Source: Monocercomonoides exilis PA203 (lineage: Eukaryota; Protista; Preaxostyla). Taken from it: a stretch of 64,000 nucleotides of DNA. The notes under the pieces were generated by a model that was given only the letters and a program-made list of their open reading frames with translations, was not told the origin of the DNA and searched no databases. Positions 49,978-64,000 of the stretch are shown one piece after another (position 1 is the first letter of the stretch; every line of letters begins with the position of its first letter). The stretch spans positions 868,001 to 932,000 of the forward strand of contig LSRY02000033.1 of NCBI GenBank assembly GCA_001643675.2, written 5' to 3'. The position numbers and the translations under genes are program-made.

Positions 49978-52900
49978 ATGGCTTCATCTTGCCAAAAGAA
50001 AAATATTGTGGACGATGAAGCAGATCCAGGAAAGCATGATCGTTCATTTCTTGGTAGAGTTAAACGATTTCTTCATTTGAGCTCTCTTGGATTAGAAATA
50101 AGCAAGCTTTCATATAGTTTGTTTTCAGATAATTCATTTTACTCTATTTTAATTCATAATTTATCCGCTACAAAACGCGATATTTAAAACATTATTATTT
50201 GGACTGATTTCAGTTGCAAATCATCTTCACAAGCAATTGATCCTTCAATCATCGATTTTGGAGATATCCGATGAGCAACATCTTGAAATCATTTGGAGAG
50301 GGTGCGAACTTTTGAAAAGATGTGAGAAAAATTCGAATTTTGCCAAGTATATTCTGGCAAGTATGGAAATCGTTCTGAAATCTGCTTCATGTCCAATTCT
50401 GCCAAGTACTTTGCCTCCATTGCTTATTAAAACGTTAGTTTTGGATTGCGATGTTAAATCTCTTCCTCAGTCTTGTCGTAGACCAACATACGAAATATTA
50501 CATGTGATTTTTTCATTATACGCAAAAGGTTACAATCTCTTTTTGATATAATTTTTAACTTTATGTGCTCCATTCTTTTATATTCATTGTCATTCATTTT
50601 TTACAGATTTGGTTGCGTCTTGTCCAACGTGGATTACCAAAATAACTGAATCTCTTGGAACAGAAAAAGAGACTAAGTTGATGCTTTCGTTCATCAGAAT
50701 AATGCTAATAATTGTTTGGAATCCACTGTTCAAAACAGAAGTTGAAAAGCACAGCGTTCTTCTTTTTGATTCGTTGAAGCCATACTTTCCAATTCCACAA
50801 TCCAAATTTTGTCACAAAAAGAAGACACACACTGAGCCGACGTATGTTTCTCTTCCTTCTTCTGTGACCCATCCGTCGCATCCACTCACTCCTCCATCTG
50901 CCTCGAGAGATGCACCCCAATCACAAGAGCCATCTTCATCTCTGCAAACAGCAAGTTCCAACTCCTCTGCTTCTGAAAAGGGCGCTGTCTCGACATCTCC
51001 TTCACCCGATGGCTCAATCATATCCAGCGATCAAGCACCCCAAAAGCACAGTGGACCAGACCCCTTTCTTCCGCTGTACCATCCCTCGCAGTACCGCCGC
51101 CAGCTGCTGTCGTCCTCCGAAAGCGGAGGAGAAGGCGCAGAGGACGAGTCGCCGAAGGAGAAGAAGCAGCCGCCCACGTATCGCACGCTGAATGTCACGC
51201 TGCTCAGAGCGCTGACTGCAACGCCTGTGTTTCTTCCGCTGGCAGCCGACCTGGTTTTGGAGAAGATGACGACGTGCTACACACAAGTGAAGCGCGACTG
51301 CCTGCTGCTGCTGTCGATCTTCTTCATCCAGTCCATCCAGCACCCCTTCTTCCACCCGCTCATGAACGTGATGGGAGGCAGCCTTCATTCTGTGCTCAAC
51401 AGACAGCTGACTCCTTCCTCTGCCCACTCCTCTTCCTTCGTCGTGTCTGCTCTCCAGTCGCCCTTTCTGCAGCAATCACAGCCACAGTTGAGGATGCTCC
51501 AGCTCCCAACAGCTGCTCAGCTGCACAGCCGACACCCGCCGATGGAGATGGTCGAAGACGACTTGTTCTTCATCCCGCCATTTGTGAGTGACTTCAGCAG
51601 ACTCAGAGACACGTCTACATCAAAAGTGTTCTACTCATTCATCTCTCCTGAACTGTTCAGAAACCCTTCTCATTTATCATCATCATCATCATCATCTTCT
51701 TCTTCTTCCTCTTCACCCTCCTCTTCTTCTGACCTCTCCTCTCAAAACCCCATCAACTGCAACTCCCCACAGCCAGACATCAACACACCCAACTGGCACA
51801 CGATGCTTATCCCTTCCCCTTCTGCCTCTCCTTCTTCTGACCCACTCCAGGCATCTCCCAAGCCTTCTGCCTCAATCGCCTTCTCTTTGCTTCAACAGAA
51901 CGAGTCACCTAAGCCAAAGAATGCGCAACAGTCGCCTCTTGCCTCTGCTTCTGAGATGGATATGCCTTCATTCCCTTTCACTCAATCGAAGAACGAAACT
52001 TCAACTCAACAAAAGACATCATCATCATCATCATCCTTTTCTTCTTCTTCTTCCTCTTCCATCTTTCCTCGCCGTCTCATCCCCACCTACACGCCAAAGA
52101 CTCCCTTCCCCTTTGGCTTCTCCCTTGTGCCCATCCACAGCAAGCTGTCTGCCCTGTGGGCAGTTATGTTGAGGGACATTGTGCAGACGCTCAACAACGA
52201 CGTGTTGAACGAGGCGCTGCTCTGCCTGCGGATTCTGCTCTTTGCGCTGGAGGTGGAAGGAGAGAGGGAGAGGATGAAGGAGATGTGGGTGCTGCTTATG
52301 AAGAAGAGAAGGCTCATGCGAAAGAGAATGTCTGAGAGGAAGTTGGCACTGATGCAGCCATCAACTTCATCATCATCATCTTCTTCCTCTTCATCATCTT
52401 CTTCTCCTTTCTCTTTTTCTTCTTCCATTCGCTCACCTCCTCTTTCTCCAAAGGCGATCGTGAAGACTTCTTCTCTTCCCCTTTCTTTCCCTCCGATTTC
52501 GCAGTTTCAGCTTCCGCCTCTCACACCTCCTTCTTTTCTGCCTTCTTCTTCCTCTCCTTCTGCTTCTGGCGTTCTTCAACAGTCTTCACGTACTCCATCT
52601 TCTCCAAATGCTACGTTTCCTATCACTTCTTCTTCATCATCATCATCCTCCTCCTCCTCTTCTTCTTCCTTTGGATTGCCAACTTCTCCTTTCTCTTCTC
52701 CTCAAAACTCATCTCATCAGAAGCAGCGCAGCAGTGCTAATCTTCGCTCCTTCTTTCTTCTCTCCTATCCTCTTGCCACATCTGCCTTCCTGCCATCGAT
52801 GCTGCCTTCTTCTGATTCTTCTTTCTCTCCCTCTCTTCCACCTCCTGATTATACACCTTCTTCTTCTTCTTCTTCTTCTTCTTCCACCTCATCCTCATCA

Positions 52901-54213
52901 TCATCATTTGTCCCCTCCTCCACCTCTCTCTCCTTCCTCTCTCTGATGTTCCATTCCTCTCTTCTCCATCTCCCCTCTCGCCTCCGCCTCATCCTCTCGC
53001 ACATCCTTGTCTTCCTCCTCCACTCCCTCCCCCAGAAGAACATGACACACGCCGCCCATTCCATTTTGAAGGCCATCTCAACTGCCTCTCCTTCCATCTG
53101 CCGTGCTGTTGTTGGCGCTGCTCTGCCGGCGCTGCTTCCGCTTTTGGTGAAAATCAAAGGAAAAAGGAAAGTGGAAGAGAGGGACGATGAGTGGAGACAC
53201 GCTGTGGCGATGGCGATGCTGCAGAAGGAGAAGGAGAGGATGAAGGAGACGGTGAATGAGGAGAAGGAGAAGGAAAAGGAGAAAGAAAAAGAAAAAGAAA
53301 AAGAGAAGTTGAATGGAGAAGCAGATCCATCGACAGAAGTGGAGATGAATGGCAACTCAGATGCCGAGTCAAGCACAGAAAGTGTCTCAAAGAAGAAGCA
53401 GGAGCCTTCTGCTAATCGTGTTGAGTGTTCTGATGAGCTGCCGAAGCCGAAGATTGTTGAAGAGGAGAAGATTGTTGACTGGAATGATCCTTATCTGCAG
53501 TTGGTGGATGGAGACAGAGAAGAAACAGGGCAGCCTATGAATTCATCACAAAGCAATGATAATCCACAAAACATTGCAAATACAAATCAATCATCTTCAT
53601 CATCATCATCATCTTCTTTCTCTTCTTCCACATGTCCTCCTCCATTCACCTTCCATTCCTCTGCTCCATTTGAGATCAATCTGCAGATTTTGGCTGTTGT
53701 TGTGGATTTATTGTCATCTCTTAGACAGACACACACCGTTCTCTCTCCATTCATCCCATGCAGAGTGTTCGCAGAGGAAATAGCAGAGATGGCGTCAGGG
53801 AAGAATAAGGAGAAGACAAAGAAGGATGAGAAAGAGAAAGAGAAGGAGAAAGAGAAGAAGGAAGAAGATAAAAAGAAAGAGAAAGAGGAGGAAGAAGAAG
53901 AAGAAGAGAAGAAAGAGCATAAGGGCATCGAAGCAAAGAAGATAGAGACATTATCACCCGTCATCCAAAGCACACAAAAACAGGAAAATTCACACGAAAT
54001 ATCTTGTCTTCACAAAAAGCACAGTGAAACATCTTCTTTCCGAAGGCCGGCCAAATCGTCTGCTTCGACAGCGTCTTCTCTTCTTTCTCTGATCAGAATA
54101 CTCACAAACCCTCCATGTCACCCGAAGATTATGTCAGATGTTGCTTCATTGAGTTATTCACACAGAAGAATGAGACTAAACATCGTATCAAATAACAAGG
54201 CATTTAGTATAAC

Positions 54214-54261
<48 letters not shown>

Positions 54262-54883
54262 TTCTTCTTCTTCTTCTTCTTCAAATTCTTCATCTTCTTC
54301 ATCTTCTTCATCTTCTTCATCTTCTTCATCTTCTTCATCTTCAGACTCTTCTTTAGTCCAAAAGAATGGAAGAAGAATGCGAAAGAATCCGACAGCGCTG
54401 CTTCCCTTTCACATCCTCCATTCGTTCTTCATTGCGCCCTTTGTGCACAAAAAGGAGAAGGAAAAGAAGAAGAAGAGGAAGCATAAGCATAGAAAATCAA
54501 AGAAAAGTCACTCAAAACAAAAGGAAGAGAAGTTATCTTTGGAAGAAGAAGGAAAGAGAACAAAAGTTGAAGCAGAAGAAGAAACAGAAACTGAGACAGA
54601 AACAGAAAGTGTGGCAGATGAAACAGAAGATGAACACTCAGAATGCTCTTCGAATGACAGCTCATCTTCATCAACATCATCATCTAATTCTTCTTCTTCT
54701 TCTTCTTCATCTTCTTCCTCTGGCTCTTCCTCCACATCTTTGTCTGCAGCAGAAGAAAAGAAAGAGAAGCTGACAGAACAAACAGCCAAAAAGGAGGAAA
54801 TTGTCATCCGATCTCCTGTTTTGAAGGGAGAAATGCCATCAACCTCAGCACAAGTCCTGAGCAGCCAACAAAATAAACATAAA

Positions 54884-54916
<33 letters not shown>

Positions 54917-57900
54917 TCATCTGACCATCCACACAGCATCAACTGTGCCTATGACGATGCACCCCCGCCTCCTCCTTTCTCTCTCATTCCTCTTCCTGAC
55001 CCTTTCCAGGCAACAGAATTCGACCTTCTTTGGGGACTGCCTGGCGAAAGCGAAGACATCGACATTTCTGTGCTGGAAGAATGGGCGCTGCTTGAAGGAG
55101 AGAAGCTGCAGAGAGAGAAAGAGAGGAAGAGAAGGAGAGAGGAAAGAGCTAAACAAGAGAAGGAGCAGCTGGATGGCTCTTCTTCTTCTTCTTCTTCTGC
55201 TTCTTCTGCTTCTGGTGACAGCAGCGGAGCTAATGAGGCGAATGGGATGGCACAAGGCTTGTTCGAAAACGAAGGTGGATTTGGGCTGTTTGAAGACACG
55301 CTTCCAGAGATAGTTCCATCGAACACAACAGAAAAGCATCCGAATGAGAGCGAAGACAAGACATCGAATGAAGACATTGGCCTTTTCTCAGAAGAAGCAG
55401 AGCAAATGAATCCTTCTTCTTCTTCCTCTTCCTCTTCAAAGGGAGTGGGTGCTTCTGGATTGGCTGCATCTGCTGTGACAGACACAGAGCCAGAGACAAA
55501 CACAGATGGAGCGACGGAACAGGAACAAGAGAAAGAGAAAGAGAAAAAGGAGTCAGATAAGAGCAATACACAGGAAATGTCACACGAATCAAAAAGAAAA
55601 CGAGAAAGAAGAGAGAAACGAGACAGAAAGAGACAACTTAAAATGTCTCGACTTGCTTCTTCTTCTTCTTCTTCTTCTTCTTCTTCTTCTCTTCCAACAG
55701 AACAATCAAAGACCCAAACAGACGCAGCATTTGCTGAGCTTTCGAGTGCTCCTTCGCCTCTTCCAGAGAATCTGTCAGATGAGCAGCCATTTGACGGAGA
55801 CGATGAACCAGATGGAGAAAGCAGGCTCAATGGAGCATCTTCTTCTTCCTCTGCCTCGAAGCATCGGCAGCAGCGCAGACAGAAGCTGACGAAGAAGCAG
55901 CGGAGAGACATGAAGATGAAGTCGTTGTTTAAGTTTATTAAGACGTCGGGTATTTGGAATGGAAATGGGGAAGAGAAGGAAGGGAAAGAGGGAGAGGGAG
56001 AAGGAGGAGAAGGAGGAGGAAATGAAGATGAGAGGAAAGAAGAGAAAGAATGGGGAAGGGAAGACGACGACGACAGCTTAACGGACGAGAGTGATGCAGA
56101 AGTTGATGGCGATGCAATTATTGAGACAATCGAAATGTTTGTGGAAGAAGAAGACGAAGAGGCAGAATTCGAAAGTATGCACAGAATCATTCACAAACAT
56201 CATCTTTTAACAAAATAAATATTTTTATTTTTTTCATTTTCTCTTTTTATGTTATTCTTTATTATGTCAATGTTATTACTCATTTATTTATTTATTTATT
56301 TATTTGTTTGTTTTTATCCTTTTTCAGTTCGTCTCTTCCCTCTTCGTGATGTGCTGATTGATCTGTTTATGACCCTCCTCAACCAGCCAATCATGCTTCT
56401 CGATGAAGAAACCCGTCTTTCTCTGACTCCTCTTCCGCCTTCCTCTCCACTCGACATCGAATCTTCTCTCTCTTCTTCCTCTGCCTCTTCTGCTGCTTCT
56501 GCTGCCTCTTCGTCCATCTCCTCCTCTCTCTCTTCTTCTCTCGTCAGAGCGTCCAACCCCTTTTTGTATGCGGAGCAGCGAAGAATGGACCAACAAGACG
56601 ATTTGCCTTCTTCTTCTTCTTCATTCTCATCATCATCATCATCCTCTTCCTCTTCCTCTTCTATTTCTTCTTCTTCTCAGCCCTTCTTCCCTGTTCCTCC
56701 TGCCTTCCATCGCCATTCCTCTCAGCTGCCTGTCTCTTTCCCTCTCTCTCCACTCGAATTCACCTCACACGGATTAGCTTTGCATGGCCTCTCCATCATC
56801 TTCTCTTGGATGACACCTCAACTCGGCGATTCTCCTTCTTTCGGAGCTTTTGCCTCTTCTTCTTCTTCTTCTCTTTCTTCGTCTGCTTCTCATATTTCTT
56901 GCCCCACTTCACCTTCTGCTGTTCAACCTTCTTTCACTTCGCCTTCTTTCTTTTCTCGTCCATCGGCCTCATCTCCTCACACATCTCCTTTCGTCTTTGA
57001 GCCTTCTCTTCATCGTTCTTCTTCTTCTTCCTCTTCCTCTTCTTCTTCCGTATTAACACCCACTTTATTGTCTGACCAGCATCTGTCTCCAACAACCCTT
57101 CGGCTCCTTCCCCCAATCCATCGCCCCATTTCTCCTCCACTCACCCCTCCTTCCTCTCTTCCCGCTGCCTCCTCTTCCTTCTCTTCTCCTTCTTCTCATC
57201 TCCAATCTTCCTTCTATCGCCCTTTCACTCGTTCCCGCTCTCCTCCTCCTGTCTCCCCTGGCCCAGCCACACCTCCTCTCTCTCCCTTCCTCTCTGCCTT
57301 CGATTCTTGTCTCTCTCCTTCTTCATTCTCCTTTGCACCAGACGCCCTTCCCTTTGGCGTGGGCATCCATCCTTCTTCTCTTCCGCCTTTCTTCTCGTCT
57401 TCTGAAGACAACCAGAACAATCTGCTGACAACTGACGTTGAGTCTCTTTTGCCTCTCGTGCTGGATCAGACAGACCTCGCCTTGTTCTTCCCGTCTCCTG
57501 TCTTGTCGCTCTTCTCTACACTCAACAACGACACGAGGAAAGAAATAGAGATGCTTGAGATGAAGGAGAAGGAAGAAATGGGCAAAGATGATGAGAAAGC
57601 AAAGGAAGGAGCAGAAAGCGATTTGACTGAAAAAATTGATAGTTCATCCATAGTTGTTTCAGACAATCAGAATAATGAAGCACTCACAAAGGCAGATGCA
57701 TCCACATCACAACGCATTTCTTCATCTGAACTTGACAAAGCCCAGCTGCAGCTGATGGAAGAATTTGGCATTGATGAAAGTGTGCTGAATTCAGTTCCTA
57801 TGAACTTCTCTCTTCCAACAGCGACTTTCTCACAAACTCTCATTTCTCCACACAACAAACAGTTCTCTTTCCTGTTTTTGACACGCAGCAAAGTGAAGTC

Positions 57901-60900
57901 TGTCTCCACTCAACTTCTGAGGCTGCGTGAAGTCTCAATGAATGTATCGATGTTCTCTCCATTGGCAGCCATCGCCCCCATCTCTCCGACAACCATGTCT
58001 CCTCAAACACGCTCACGGATGCTGTTCCCTCGCCCTCTTTCTCCTCCTCCTCCAACTATTTCATCAGCTTCTTCTTATTCATCATCATCATCATCTTCTT
58101 CTTCTTCTTCATCTTCGTTTTCATTGCCTTCTTCAAATTCTGCCTCATCTTTGTCTCCGCTGTGCTTACCAACAACACCTCCAATTACATCAACTTTACC
58201 TCCTCCATCCTCAATGTCACGCACATCTTCATTGACATCGTCTTCTTCCACACTCATCAACTCTGAGAATACAAACGATGCCTTCCAAATTGCACCTCCA
58301 TTCAACAGATCAACAAGCATAAACAGCGGAGTTGTTTCGCCTTCTGCTCTGTCAGCGTTTTCTTATTCTTCTGCTGAACGTCCATCAGCCGCTGGAATTA
58401 ACCATTCTACAAACATTTCTGGTTCGTCTTCTTCTTTTGCTATTGACAACAACAACAAGCTTGTTTCATCTGATGATTACTCAACACACGACGATGCACC
58501 ACATTCTCTTCAGCCAATTAAGCTTCCATCCGAAATGCGGTCACACGAAGGTAATGTCTTTTTGACTCTTCTTCGGCACATTTTCGAAGCGTCCTTGACA
58601 GATTCGTCGGATCTGCGGCGCAAACAGTGCTGGCTGTGTGTTTGTGAGTGTGCAGGGCTGATCAATGGCTTCTCGGGAGCAGATGCAAGAGAACAATCGC
58701 AGGCTGAGCTGAAGGAGAAGAGGGAGGAGTACGAAAGACGGAGATCGGGAAGGAAAGAGACAGAGCTGGAAAGCAGAAGCAAGAAGCAGAGAGAGGAAGA
58801 GAAGAGGAAGAAAGAAGGAGAAGAGGAATGGAAAGAAAGAACGGTATATTTTGAGGTGTATGATTTGTGCGAAGAGCTAAAGATAGTTGAAGGCTACCAA
58901 CAAGACGGTACACAACAGAATTTCGATGAAATCACATCGACATCAATTCCTTCAATTGGAAAGCTATCTCAAACGCCACGTGCAGATCAAGAATTCTCTT
59001 CACTCGATGCAGCAACAAAGAATCCGATGTATCACTTTTTGCGTGTTGTGTTCATTCCTTCGCTGTTTGGGCTGGTTGAAGCAATGACAGATGGCAACTT
59101 GTTGGATTGGAACACTTCTGAACGGAAAGAAAGAGGAATTGCAGCTCTTTTGAGAAGTGTCCTGTTCTGTGTGGAAGAGATAAGCGAAGAAGAGATCTGC
59201 AATTTGCTTGTTCTCAACAAAGAAGATGATTGCAATGAAAAACAAACAAGAATAAGACAAAAGTTTCCTCCGCCATTTGCTCTGCTTCCTCCAGCAGTCT
59301 TTTTGGAAAACATGTGCCTTCTCTGCTTTTGTCTTCCGTCGTTCTTTTCGCATTCCATTTTATTGCTTCTCATTCACACGTTGGCTTTTATATCACACAC
59401 ACAGATACTTCCATATTCCTCTCTGATAACCAGAGTTGCTTTGACAGATGCAATCACTACGCCTTTGCCAAAACTGAATATGAATGCCTTTCTGAATCAT
59501 TTGAACACATTTTCACTTCTTGTGCTGGAGAAAGAAAGCCGAATGGGACTTGATCTCAGAGCTAAAAGAAAAGCAATGAAGAAGCAAATGCAACAAAATA
59601 AGTCTGATAACAAAACTGATCCAGATTATGATGCCAGAGTTGAAGAGATTGAGTGGGCAATGACACACCCAACATGCTTTGAGGAGGAGAGCGATCTCAC
59701 TTTTGCATTCTTTGCATCAAGAGTTCTTTACCCGCACTTGCTTCAATCTGTTCTTCACTTATGCTTCACTTATCAAGCAAGCACTACCAATTCTCATGAG
59801 ACATCTGCTGCTAGTCAAATTCCTGTCTATCAATATCTGCCGAATGAGATTGTCGAAGCTATCTCCACATTTGCAACCATCTCTGGAAGTGTTCTGAGGA
59901 TGGAGCAAAAAACAGCTGATCCACTGCATTCAACGCCTGTGATATGCTTCATTCTACACATAATCAAATGGTGCTCACGCAACATGCAAACAGAGCAAGA
60001 CAAAGCAGAAGAGCCAGCTTTCAGCGATGTGAATGATTTGTGCTGTGCAATGGGAGACATGGTTGGCAAAGCAATCTTCAGATTTGCCCCAGGAGACGAT
60101 GTTTCTTCAACAGACGAACTCAGATTTGTCAGATGCTCTGCACTTTTGCTTCATCTTCTTAATGTTTGTCTTCCTCCGCTTTCGCTCCATAATTTGCTTG
60201 AGAAGGCACAAGACTCTGAAAACGACTATGTTCCGTATTTTGAATTGGAATTACTTCAAAAACGAGAAAAGGAGTGCGAGCCTTTCATGGCTGATGTCAC
60301 ACATTCCATCACGTTCCTTCTTTCTTCACTGAAAAACGCTTCACCAGAAAGAACAAGCAATTCAGCTTCAACCGACTCAGGCAGGATAAATACAATTCAA
60401 ATTAATGACTTGAATCTTTTGAATGAACTGACAACAAAAGTGATGAGCATATGGACGAAAAAGATTATCATGTTTTGTTCTCTTTGCGAGCATATCAGCA
60501 ACGGAGCTGAGTTCGCACAAATAATCAAACGATCCTTTGGCAGAGGAAAGCTGACTTGTGTGCTAACTTTCCCTGCAGAAGATTCCATCAGCAGTGTCAG
60601 CATTGTGGGCGAGTGGGACAATTGGAGCAGTAAGATTCCAATGGAACTTAATGCAACCAGGAATTTGTGGATGGCTGATTTGCTGGATGAGAAATTCAGT
60701 CTGTCAAATGCGCTGATTGAAGGGAAGAAATATCAGTTTAAGTTTGTGATCAACAAAAATGATTGGAGGGTGAACAATTCATATCAAATCGAAAAAGATG
60801 TGAACTGTAACACAAACAACACCAAAAAGATTGTATTTGATTTTGAGTCAATAAACGACACGGGGAAAACAAATGATTCACTTTTGTGGGAAGTGCTGAA

Positions 60901-63900
60901 TTCTCTCTTTGAGATGGCGCTGCCACTTCCAATAGACAGTACACTTTATGAAATCTTGCTTCCTTCTCAGCTTTCTTTCAAACATGCTGTGCCTTTCGAG
61001 GCATTTCTTGAGTCTGTTACACCATTTTCAGCAATTTCATCTGAAAATAAATCATTGCCCTTGCCTGAAAAACAACAAAAGGATAATAAATTAACAGAAT
61101 CTGATCAGTTTTCATTACACATCAATGAATTGTCATCTCGTCTCCATTCACTTGGCATTGTTCTTTCTTCGATTTCTTCAATGCGAAATATCGGCGATTT
61201 CTCATTTATCAGACTTTCGCATCTTATTGTTCTTCATGTGACATCTGCCATTCCACACTTGATCTGCAATTGCTTTAAGACACCGAATCATTACTCACAA
61301 GCATCACACAATTCATTTTCACCTTTCTCTTCTGAGGAAATGCATGGCGCTTTGTCTCGCTTCTTCCAACTCTTACTACCATCAGTGTCTTCTTTGCTTC
61401 AGAATACACTCGTTGGCACATTTGCTCCACGATGTGGACATCACAACACAAAAAGAAGTCCGCAATCCACTCCTAATTCATATGTTCAGTCCAAAGACAA
61501 AGTGACCCCAACACAAAAAGCGCAAACTCCTCCAACAACACCTCCACATGTTTATTCTCCCACCGCTACATCAACAGCAGCTCATTCGTTTTCTCCTTCG
61601 CTCATGTCATTTGGGTCGCTAACTCTGTCACCTTCTCCAACTCCACCGCATCCTTTCAGTTCATCTCCTTCACCAGCATTCACTCCAACTCCTGTTCCTA
61701 CGCCTTCTCCTTCTCCATTTGATATCCAAAACAGCTTTGACTCAGACGATCCTATCGAATCTGCAATGATGCTTTTCTTGTCAATTGTATCTCCTTTCCT
61801 AAGCGCATTGAATGAGCTCGTACCAAATAGAACAGCGATTCAGCAGGATTCACAGGCTTCGTTCACAACAAATGATGAGGCAGTTTCGTGGCTGATTGCT
61901 TTCATCTGGAAGATTCATGCACTGTTCACACACGCCATAGACACATTCCTTCTGACTGGAGAGTTCCGTCCATCTCCTCCAATCTCTCTTTCTCTTCCTG
62001 CTTCTCATTCGATCCATCCATTTTCAAACACTTTCGATTTTTGCTCTGCAACAGATTCTGCTAACTTTGCATTAAATTCGAATGGATCAAAAGGCATTTC
62101 ATCGCCAAGTGCTCCAGCTGAGCGCGGAATCATCCTTCCTCGAAAGCTACAAAGGCAGCAGGCACAGTCTAATGTGGTGCACAATTCTGGACTGCTTTCT
62201 TCTCTTCTAACTTTCAGAATGTATGCTGACAGGATTGAGTACATTCCGTCTGTTTCTCTATTTGCGGAGGAAGAGGAAGAGGAAGAGGAGGCGGAAGAAG
62301 AGGAACAAAATGAAGATCATAAGGCGCAGGAATGTAATGGAGGAGAATCTTCTCAAGAACAAAGCAATATCAGTCAACAAGGCGAGAGTGAAATCAACAA
62401 CAATTCATCTTCACATGCTCCGTCTTCAATAATTTCTGATTCAATGCCAATAAATCTGTTTTATCAACCTCCACCACCTTCATTAATGCAATCCAAATTT
62501 GTTCCACCAACATTTCCTCTTCATTGGCATTCATCTTATGAGACTGATATTGGCAAGCAGACACAATCTCGTCACACATCCTCCTTTATGACTGTTGCAT
62601 CATTGACTTCTCCAAGAGGCATCAATTCTTTGTCGAATGATTCTGCTCAGCGCTTTGCACAGAGCAGCAGCTTTATTCCACCAAAGAACATGAGATGCAT
62701 TGCGCTTCTTCCTCGGTTCATACTCGAAAATCTGTTTATCACAACTCTGAACATCCTCAAAGTTGCATTCAACGAAAAAGCAAATGCTGACGATACTTCT
62801 GTTGAGCAGTCAGCCTCTTCTTGTACTTCATCTGCTTCATCTTCCATTCATAACAACACTGCTTGTATCTCTTCGCACTCTTGCTCTATTTCTCAAGCAA
62901 CAAATTGCGATATGACTAATGCCAAGACTTTTTCACAGCATCTGCTAACCACTTCGAGCCCTCTTTTGCTTTGTCTTCTCAGCATCGTTTGCAGCGGAAC
63001 TCTCCCAACAGTTCTTTATGAACCAATTGCAGCACTTTTCCATGCAAAGATCATCAACCCTCGCAATCCATCGCTTGCGCTGCCTGAACATTACACAGAA
63101 AAAGGATGGAGTGGCTCTGCGTCAGACTCAAAAGGAAAGAACGATGCTTTCTCTTTGCTGGGTGGCACATCAGAAGTGGAATCCTCTCTTGCATTGGCAT
63201 CGTTGGCTCTGCTGCACTCTGGTTCCGAACGTCTGGCGCTTTTGAATGACGATGGAGACGAGATGAGAAATGAGGTGGCAGAAAGCGACGGTTCGAACAT
63301 TTCTGAAGAGACGGATGCACAAACAGTCGGAAGCATTCATTCAGCATCAGGTGAAAGTGAATATAGAGGATTTGTTGAATTGAATGACGAGTTTGGATTT
63401 GGAGAAGGAGAAGTTGTTGAGGAAAACGAAGGGTCTGATGATGAACTTGACGAAGAAGATGGACTTTTGAACTATTCATCTCTTTTAAGTGGGACAAAAA
63501 CAACAACATTTGAAAGTACCTCCAAGCTGAACGAAAAAGAAAGCGCCAAACAGAAAAAAGCAGTGTTATTAAGAATGATACCGTTGCTCAATGCAACAAC
63601 AACGAATTCTTATTCTTCATCAGTGCTTATCAATCAACAGCAGTCGTTTTCGCATCATCCATCCAATAGTTTCACAAATCAATCATCTTATCATCCATTT
63701 GCTTTTGTGATGTCATCGCAGTTTCATCCTCGCTTGGTGCGTGTTACAAGAATGGTTCCTTCGATTGCAATTGCGTTATCGCCATGTGGAGCAATTGCTG
63801 CAGCAGAAGGCGAATCAATTACAGGAATAATTGTATCTGTGATTGAAGGACTCATCCAAAGACATCACACACATTTACAAACTTGTTCTTTATTATTATT

Positions 63901-64000
63901 ATCATCTTCTTCTTCTTCATCTTCATCTTCATCTTCATCTTTGACAGAAGCATCAACCAACTTTGTTAGTTGTGTTTTAGAAGGACTGAGCTGTTTGTGC
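49978..64000 (+). CDS. MMS19: Giant MMS19/MET18-like CIA targeting-complex scaffold (>4,500 aa, runs off right edge) with internal CBM48-like domain
   Basis: Exons 49978-50116, 50214-50528, 50607-56174 and 56328->64000. The last is absent from the track because no stop is reached; I spot-checked its frame. MMS19_N-like motifs occur in order: VKSLPQSCRRPTYEIL, GTEKETKLML, LFDSLKPYFPI, LLRALTATPVF..LVLEKM..VKRDCL. C-terminal-like blocks are CAGLIN, MRCIALLPRFILEN and LLSIVCSGTLPTVL. Confidence 0.72.
54212..54345 (+). repeat. (TCA)n/(TCT)n coding microsatellite encoding ~45 residues of almost pure Ser
   Basis: Seen directly. It is one of many poly-Ser tracts in the long exons. Confidence 0.9.

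Follow-up and report, generated by a model that had tools for sequence, protein, structure and literature searches.

A CBM48 domain inside the giant MMS19_N-bearing gene of Monocercomonoides exilis as a candidate glycogen anchor

What is a glycogen-binding-type module doing in the middle of a gene that begins like MMS19, the scaffold of the cytosolic iron-sulfur (Fe-S) targeting complex? The question is raised by a 64,000-nt stretch of the genome of Monocercomonoides exilis (contig LSRY02000033.1, positions 868,001 to 932,000, forward strand), which we analyzed as a whole and call the window; coordinates given without a contig are positions in it. A first-pass annotation of this sequence had proposed that a carbohydrate-binding module (CBM) of family 48, of the AMPK-beta type, is embedded in an MMS19-like protein. 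We find that positions 60545-60850 encode a genuine, folded CBM48 of the AMPK-beta/SEX4 type, far beyond chance, and the evidence supports its being embedded in an MMS19_N-bearing protein. We assign a probability of roughly 0.6 to the reading that this CBM works, or nearly works, as a glucan anchor and so would bring a giant scaffold derived from MMS19 to glycogen granules. Both the domain family and its use in targeting are familiar; the novelty is the host protein.

The peptide singled out by the first-pass annotation is the exact frame-1 translation of 60551-60835. With Pfam, the AMPK1_CBM model (PF16561) aligns to 60590-60832 and exceeds its curated cut-off (35.5 bits, cut-off 26.8; E 1.2e-8), and a six-frame search of the genome returns the same site, again above cut-off (35.0 bits); the sister model CBM_48 falls under its own cut-off here (E 0.024). 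For the structural comparison we used an alignment of 14 rows, termed A2, which holds the studied CBM, ten paralogous CBMs of the same genome and three metagenomic relatives. AlphaFold2, run on A2 over positions 60530-60880, gives an all-beta sandwich of eleven strands with a mean predicted local distance difference test (pLDDT) score of 88.5; the strands cover residues 6-107 of that segment, and the limits of the domain, ~60545-60850, were set from them. When this model is compared with the Protein Data Bank (PDB) by Foldseek, the top matches are the cyclodextrin-bound CBMs of AMPK beta2/beta1 (4yee, 1z0n, 4yef) together with SEX4 (3nme, 4pyh), at probability 1.0 and target-normalized template modeling (TM) scores of 0.76-0.85 (4yee, 3nme, 1z0n). 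The A2 profile recovers the AMPK beta CBMs among PDB chains at ~1e-19, along with LSF1, SIP2 and SEX4, and a PDB search with the CBM as a single sequence gave no relevant match. The AMPK-beta character claimed for the domain is thus borne out by the family score, the confident model and the structural neighbors alike. The domain and its carbohydrate-binding positions are listed below, the residue equivalences having been read from A2 and from the printed alignment of the A2 profile to AMPK beta2.

60545..60850, plus strand: CBM48 / AMPK1_CBM beta-sandwich domain, ~102 aa (Pfam match, AlphaFold2 strands, Foldseek).
60623..60625, plus strand: Trp codon, equivalent of the sugar-stacking W100 of AMPK beta1 (A2, profile alignment).
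60740..60742, plus strand: Lys codon, equivalent of AMPK beta1 K126 (A2, profile alignment).
60764..60766, plus strand: Trp codon, equivalent of AMPK beta1 W133 (A2, profile alignment).
60803..60820, plus strand: loop NCNTNN, aligned with L146-G147-T148-V149-N150-N151 of AMPK beta (A2, profile alignment).

Residue numbers are those of AMPK beta1, in which N150 is a sugar-contacting residue. Of the seven AMPK beta contact positions considered (W100, K126, W133, L146, G147, T148 and N150), four are retained and three are changed; the equivalents of N150 and N151 are present as NN at 60815-60820. With the key residues retained and L146, G147 and T148 changed, the core of the site would be intact and its rim altered, and we consider glucan binding by the domain slightly more likely than not. 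In AMPK beta1, glycogen binding is lost with the substitutions W100G and K126Q and reduced with W133L and G147R (PMC6274970).

The first-pass annotation had also held that the domain is internal and not a neighboring gene, and the reading frame agrees with this. The CBM lies inside one stop-free frame of 2,643 codons (56219-64150), and an upstream frame of 1,869 codons (50609-56215) is in phase with it, the sole separator being a TAA at 56216-56218. This TAA is part of an intron that lies between two long exons:

50608..56174, plus strand: preceding exon, ~1,855 codons, with Ser/Glu/Lys low-complexity runs; its 5' boundary is predicted from sequence only.
56175..56327, plus strand: T-rich GT..AG intron, GTATGC...TTTTTCAG, 153 nt, a multiple of three (sequence and RNA contigs).
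56328..64000 and on past the window end, plus strand: last exon, 2,606 codons (open frame and RNA contigs).

The stop of the last exon stands at the window-equivalent 64148-64150 (L005:8148-8150), and the CBM occupies codons ~1406-1507 of this exon. The whole gene comes to ~4,600 codons and is single-copy; the exact splice sites of its first exons (49978-50608) could not be fixed from sequence alone. RNA runs, probably those of the M. exilis culture study PMC12308965, were available for comparison, and all four contain 94-95% of the words of 56001-62000. In each of the four, an 837-nt contig passes from 56001-56174 directly to 56328-56599, with the intron removed exactly and in frame, and the frame of the CBM is thereby spliced to the MMS19_N exon, which places the two in the same gene, as had been proposed. 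Contigs without a joint run across the CBM (58131-60861 in X2 and X3, 58638-60864 in X1), and further contigs reach from ~60860 to past 62000. Because the contigs are unbroken from 58131 across the CBM, the domain is transcribed, is joined to its upstream flank and is not spliced out. Between the intron junction and the CBM, the continuity of the gene rests on the unbroken frame.

The MMS19 signal comes from the start of the gene, whose exons were searched separately, by reference, and consists of the following pieces:

50153..50548, plus strand: upstream coding piece, MMS19_N profile 49-113 (Pfam E 0.09, the only family listed).
50627-50797 and 51152-51319, plus strand: start of the ~1,855-codon exon, MMS19_N profile 124-235 (Pfam).

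MMS19_N (PF14500) matches the first 464 aa of that exon over profile positions 180-235 with 34.1 bits (cut-off 26.7), and profile positions 124-176 are matched weakly in 50552-50900, where MMS19_N is the best or only Pfam family. The three pieces (49-113, 124-176 and 180-235) are collinear and span profile positions 49-235 of 262. The top PDB sequence match of the N-terminal piece is yeast Met18/MMS19, weakly so (E 0.96), and a six-frame search of the 82-Mb genome found no second MMS19_N locus. In one respect the first-pass annotation did not hold: it had placed the CBM between MMS19-like blocks, and the sole MMS19 signal, 50153-51319, lies ~3,100 codons upstream. Downstream of that signal, neither Pfam nor the six-frame search finds MMS19_C, and PDB sequence searches with the last 382, 100 and 64 residues return no MMS19. 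A possible resemblance of the last 25 residues to the MMS19 C-terminal motif was not confirmed by these PDB searches. The six-frame genome search for MMS19_C gave four weak candidates, all outside this gene, and the two that we examined are both importin-like.

A protein-language-model search with both flanks of the CBM returned generic alpha-solenoid families at weak scores and low recognition values; MMS19 clusters were the most frequent set (5/30 and 3/30 for the two flanks), which at such low recognition is a lead only; MMS19 itself is a HEAT-repeat alpha-solenoid. Modeled by AlphaFold2 from the single sequence, the last 510 aa come out helical, but the model is unreliable (pLDDT 39.9) and was not used for a fold search. 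The flanks of the CBM are orphan sequence and probably helical. Pfam finds no AMPKBI domain (PF04739), the C-terminal domain by which AMPK beta binds the alpha and gamma subunits, in either long frame, and this rules the host out as a beta subunit of AMPK. In our estimate there is slightly less than an even chance that the protein as a whole retains the MMS19 function of scaffolding the cytosolic Fe-S targeting complex.

The relatives found outside the genome match the domain only. When the CBM and the C-terminal part (1,199 aa) were searched with HMMER against 1.84 billion representative proteins, three matches came back, all of them metagenomic fragments of 109-194 aa aligned to the CBM only, and word-based searches with residues 800-2606 of the last exon and with the 580-aa block before the CBM gave no matches. 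Within the genome, the CBM flanks have no paralogue, and on this ground we ruled out that the 3' half is a member of a family of giant CBM proteins.

The CBM, by contrast with its flanks, has many paralogues. The six-frame search finds 27 AMPK1_CBM matches at ~20 loci; AMPK-beta-like genes with an AMPKBI domain sit at two other loci (C63 and C28), and several frames of 1,000-1,800 codons carry AMPK1_CBM as their only Pfam domain:

G000:C19, 1,793 aa; C47, 1,542; C11, 1,455; C58, 1,341; C39, 1,007: giant CBM-bearing frames with no Pfam domain other than AMPK1_CBM.

The C19 frame (G000:C19:936001-946000, L025:1807-7185) holds at least two CBM copies, with 123 bits in total. Judged from these profile matches, the module is commonly deployed in the lineage and its spread is lineage-specific; with ~20 AMPK1_CBM loci, several of them in giant frames, the studied case is therefore less surprising. 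The first-pass annotation had called the architecture one that it did not recognize. As far as we have checked, the combination of MMS19_N and CBM48 is indeed new, and we found no mention of MMS19 together with CBM48 in the papers searched; the sense in which it was thought unusual is weakened by the number of such loci.

Set against known systems, the domain stands closest to the CBM of AMPK beta1/beta2 (PF16561, CAZy CBM48; 1z0n, 4yee), which shares the beta-sandwich, provides the best structural and profile matches and has the W100, K126, W133 and N150 equivalents in common with it. Unlike AMPK beta, the studied gene lacks AMPKBI, carries a 13-residue insertion and has L146/G147/T148 replaced, and its CBM lies ~3,000 residues into a giant and probably alpha-helical protein. 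SEX4 and LSF1 (3nme, 4pyh, 8j5d), Foldseek ranks 2 and 4 and also recovered by the A2 profile, likewise use CBM48 as a targeting module in a larger protein with another main activity; their partner domain is a dual-specificity phosphatase acting on glucan, whereas the partner here is a non-enzymatic scaffold. With MMS19/Met18, the targeting scaffold of cytosolic iron-sulfur cluster assembly (CIA; 8usp), the gene shares an N-terminal domain that matches positions 49-235 of MMS19_N, but the protein is ~4.5x longer, MMS19_C is undetectable, and kilobases of Ser/Glu/Lys low complexity and an internal CBM48 are present. The giant CBM frames of the same genome share with it a lineage-specific use of the module in large proteins; they have no similarity to the studied protein outside the CBM, and their CBM is mostly N- or C-terminal and falls on another branch of a weak tree.

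In the explanation that we favor, the CBM48 belongs to the interior of a very large single-copy gene, ~4,600 codons long, whose N-terminus is a divergent MMS19_N and whose remainder consists of low-complexity runs and orphan, probably helical blocks. M. exilis has conspicuous glycogen granules (PMC6759080), and the CBM may anchor the giant scaffold to the granules that fill the cell, by analogy with the CBM48-mediated targeting of AMPK, SEX4 and LSF1 to glycogen or starch. Because the two stacking Trp residues, the Lys and the Asn of AMPK beta are retained, glycogen anchoring appears to us the most likely mechanism. Fe-S delivery and glucan binding could then be coupled. The most ambitious form of this idea, in which the late-acting scaffold MMS19 was rebuilt, in an organism that has lost its mitochondria, as a giant protein docked on glycogen through an inserted CBM48, with Fe-S maturation placed on or gated by the carbohydrate store, and in which that docking is one case of a wider use of glycogen granules as an organizing platform in the lineage, strikes us as improbable.

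Several observations weigh against glycogen anchoring by an MMS19-derived scaffold. At the binding site, N, C and N stand in place of L146, G147 and T148, and the replaced G147 is a position at which a substitution, G147R, partly disrupts binding in AMPK beta1 (PMC6274970). A2 further shows an insertion of ~13 residues (DLLDEKFSLSNAL) relative to AMPK beta, between two strands. The RNA data are assembled contigs from four metatranscriptome runs of one study, and no single RNA record extends from the MMS19_N exon to the CBM: the records break at low-complexity runs and at ~60860, and poly-Ser/Pro runs interrupt the contigs between the intron junction and the CBM, so that none connects the two. 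No orthologue of the gene was found in the representative proteins; this blank says little about other oxymonads, because the proteome of this organism is evidently missing from the collections, as are probably the proteomes of its relatives. Finally, MMS19_C (PF12460) gives no match at E <= 10 in the whole frames, in five large pieces or in 20 structured blocks, and since it is undetected across the gene, a CIA1/CIA2-binding end like that of MMS19 would be hypothetical here.

The last of these points bears on the alternative that survives best, a chimera in which an N-terminal remnant of MMS19 was fused to an unrelated, CBM-carrying orphan, so that there is no working MMS19 and the link between Fe-S and glycogen is accidental. 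MMS19_C is absent by every test, several other giant frames have AMPK1_CBM as their only recognizable domain, and the two halves meet at an intron; yet the sequences flanking the CBM are without paralogues in the genome and hence are not part of a giant CBM-protein family, MMS19 clusters head the language-model sets for those same flanks, albeit with weak scores and low recognition, and the last 25 residues may resemble the MMS19 C-terminal motif, which the PDB searches did not bear out. A further measure is the GC content at third codon positions (GC3), which along 50609-64000 falls gradually from 0.76 (51059-51508) to 0.25-0.4 in the 3' half. Used as a test for a fusion boundary, this profile slopes steadily and does not jump at the intron, which argues weakly against a recent fusion. 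We regard the chimera as rather doubtful, and it is compatible with a glucan-anchoring role of the domain itself. The GC3 of the segment with the CBM is 0.49, slightly above that of its neighbors.

It is also conceivable that the fold of the CBM was kept and its carbohydrate binding lost, the domain now serving as a protein-protein surface or riding as a neutral passenger in a fast-evolving, insertion-tolerant giant. This would account for the three changed binding positions out of seven and for the 13-residue insertion; it would also suit a gene that tolerates kilobases of low-complexity insertions, and a domain whose Pfam score is the lowest among the full-length AMPK1_CBM matches of the genome (35 bits, the others having 43-69). 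However, W133 is retained, as are W100 and K126, whose mutation abolishes binding in AMPK beta1, and the confident model superposes on ligand-bound CBMs. Moreover, an N at the T148 position is found in most of the same-genome paralogues in A2, and because most of them carry it, we read this change as a habit of the lineage and not as decay. Loss of binding is in our view unlikely, and a functional or nearly functional anchor is the reading we retain.

Least probable by some distance is that the locus makes several products, with an RNA end near 60860 or internal starts putting the MMS19_N part and the CBM/C-terminal part on different molecules: the contigs do break at 60857-60864 in all four runs, right after an AATAAA, and the depth is somewhat lower downstream, but there is no joint or poly(A) loose end at the break, the frame runs on for 1,100 codons past it, holes between assembled contigs prove nothing, and an end at 60860 would keep the CBM on one RNA with everything upstream.

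The break itself has some features of its own. It falls within 60851-60869, directly 3' of the AATAAA and 5' of GGGGAAAA, and the next contigs start at 60858-60863, so that neighboring contigs overlap by 2-5 nt or leave 3 nt uncovered; overlaps of 20-28 nt are seen at other breaks. RNA depth past ~60860 is lower by 20-40% in three runs. Such a break could come from an internal RNA end, from a filter hole or from an allele bubble. Elsewhere, one contig per run has an extra C behind 57182, where the sequence is low-complexity Ser/Pro. Depths at this place sum to 77-134, and for this reason we consider the extra C probably to be cross-laid repeat sequence and not a frameshift allele.

According to an earlier report, MMS19 could not be identified in oxymonads (PMC6231488). 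The genome's only MMS19_N-bearing gene now proves to be transcribed and ~4,600 codons long, with a glycogen-binding-type module in mid-gene. If the module binds glycogen and the protein works in the CIA complex, Fe-S protein delivery would for the first time be physically linked to a store of carbohydrate, and this in the model eukaryote without mitochondria. If not, the locus still illustrates how freely CBM48 has spread into large proteins of this lineage. In either event, a small, well-folding domain offers a testable way into a giant orphan protein that is otherwise intractable.

Very long frames are common in this genome, since Sec7-domain genes also occupy them: such genes (G000:C25:618389, C51:148284, C9:745830 and others) lie in open frames of 3,400-4,400 codons, and at E <= 0.01 no AMPK1_CBM match falls on any of the nine Sec7 loci. 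The giant CBM frames on C47, C58, C11 and C39 correspond to L026-L029. In a short and weak tree, the studied CBM groups with the three metagenomic fragments and with two further loci, L008 (G000:C11:1441861-1442124) and L009 (G000:C2:345114-345371), apart from the AMPK-beta-type copies. L008 and L009 are near-identical frames of ~245 codons on separate contigs, start MLSETD(K/R)LHLAEAIPSPWQNSIF, and hold one CBM each, of the same WDxW / N-x-x-x-W subtype as the studied CBM, of which they are the nearest relatives within the genome.

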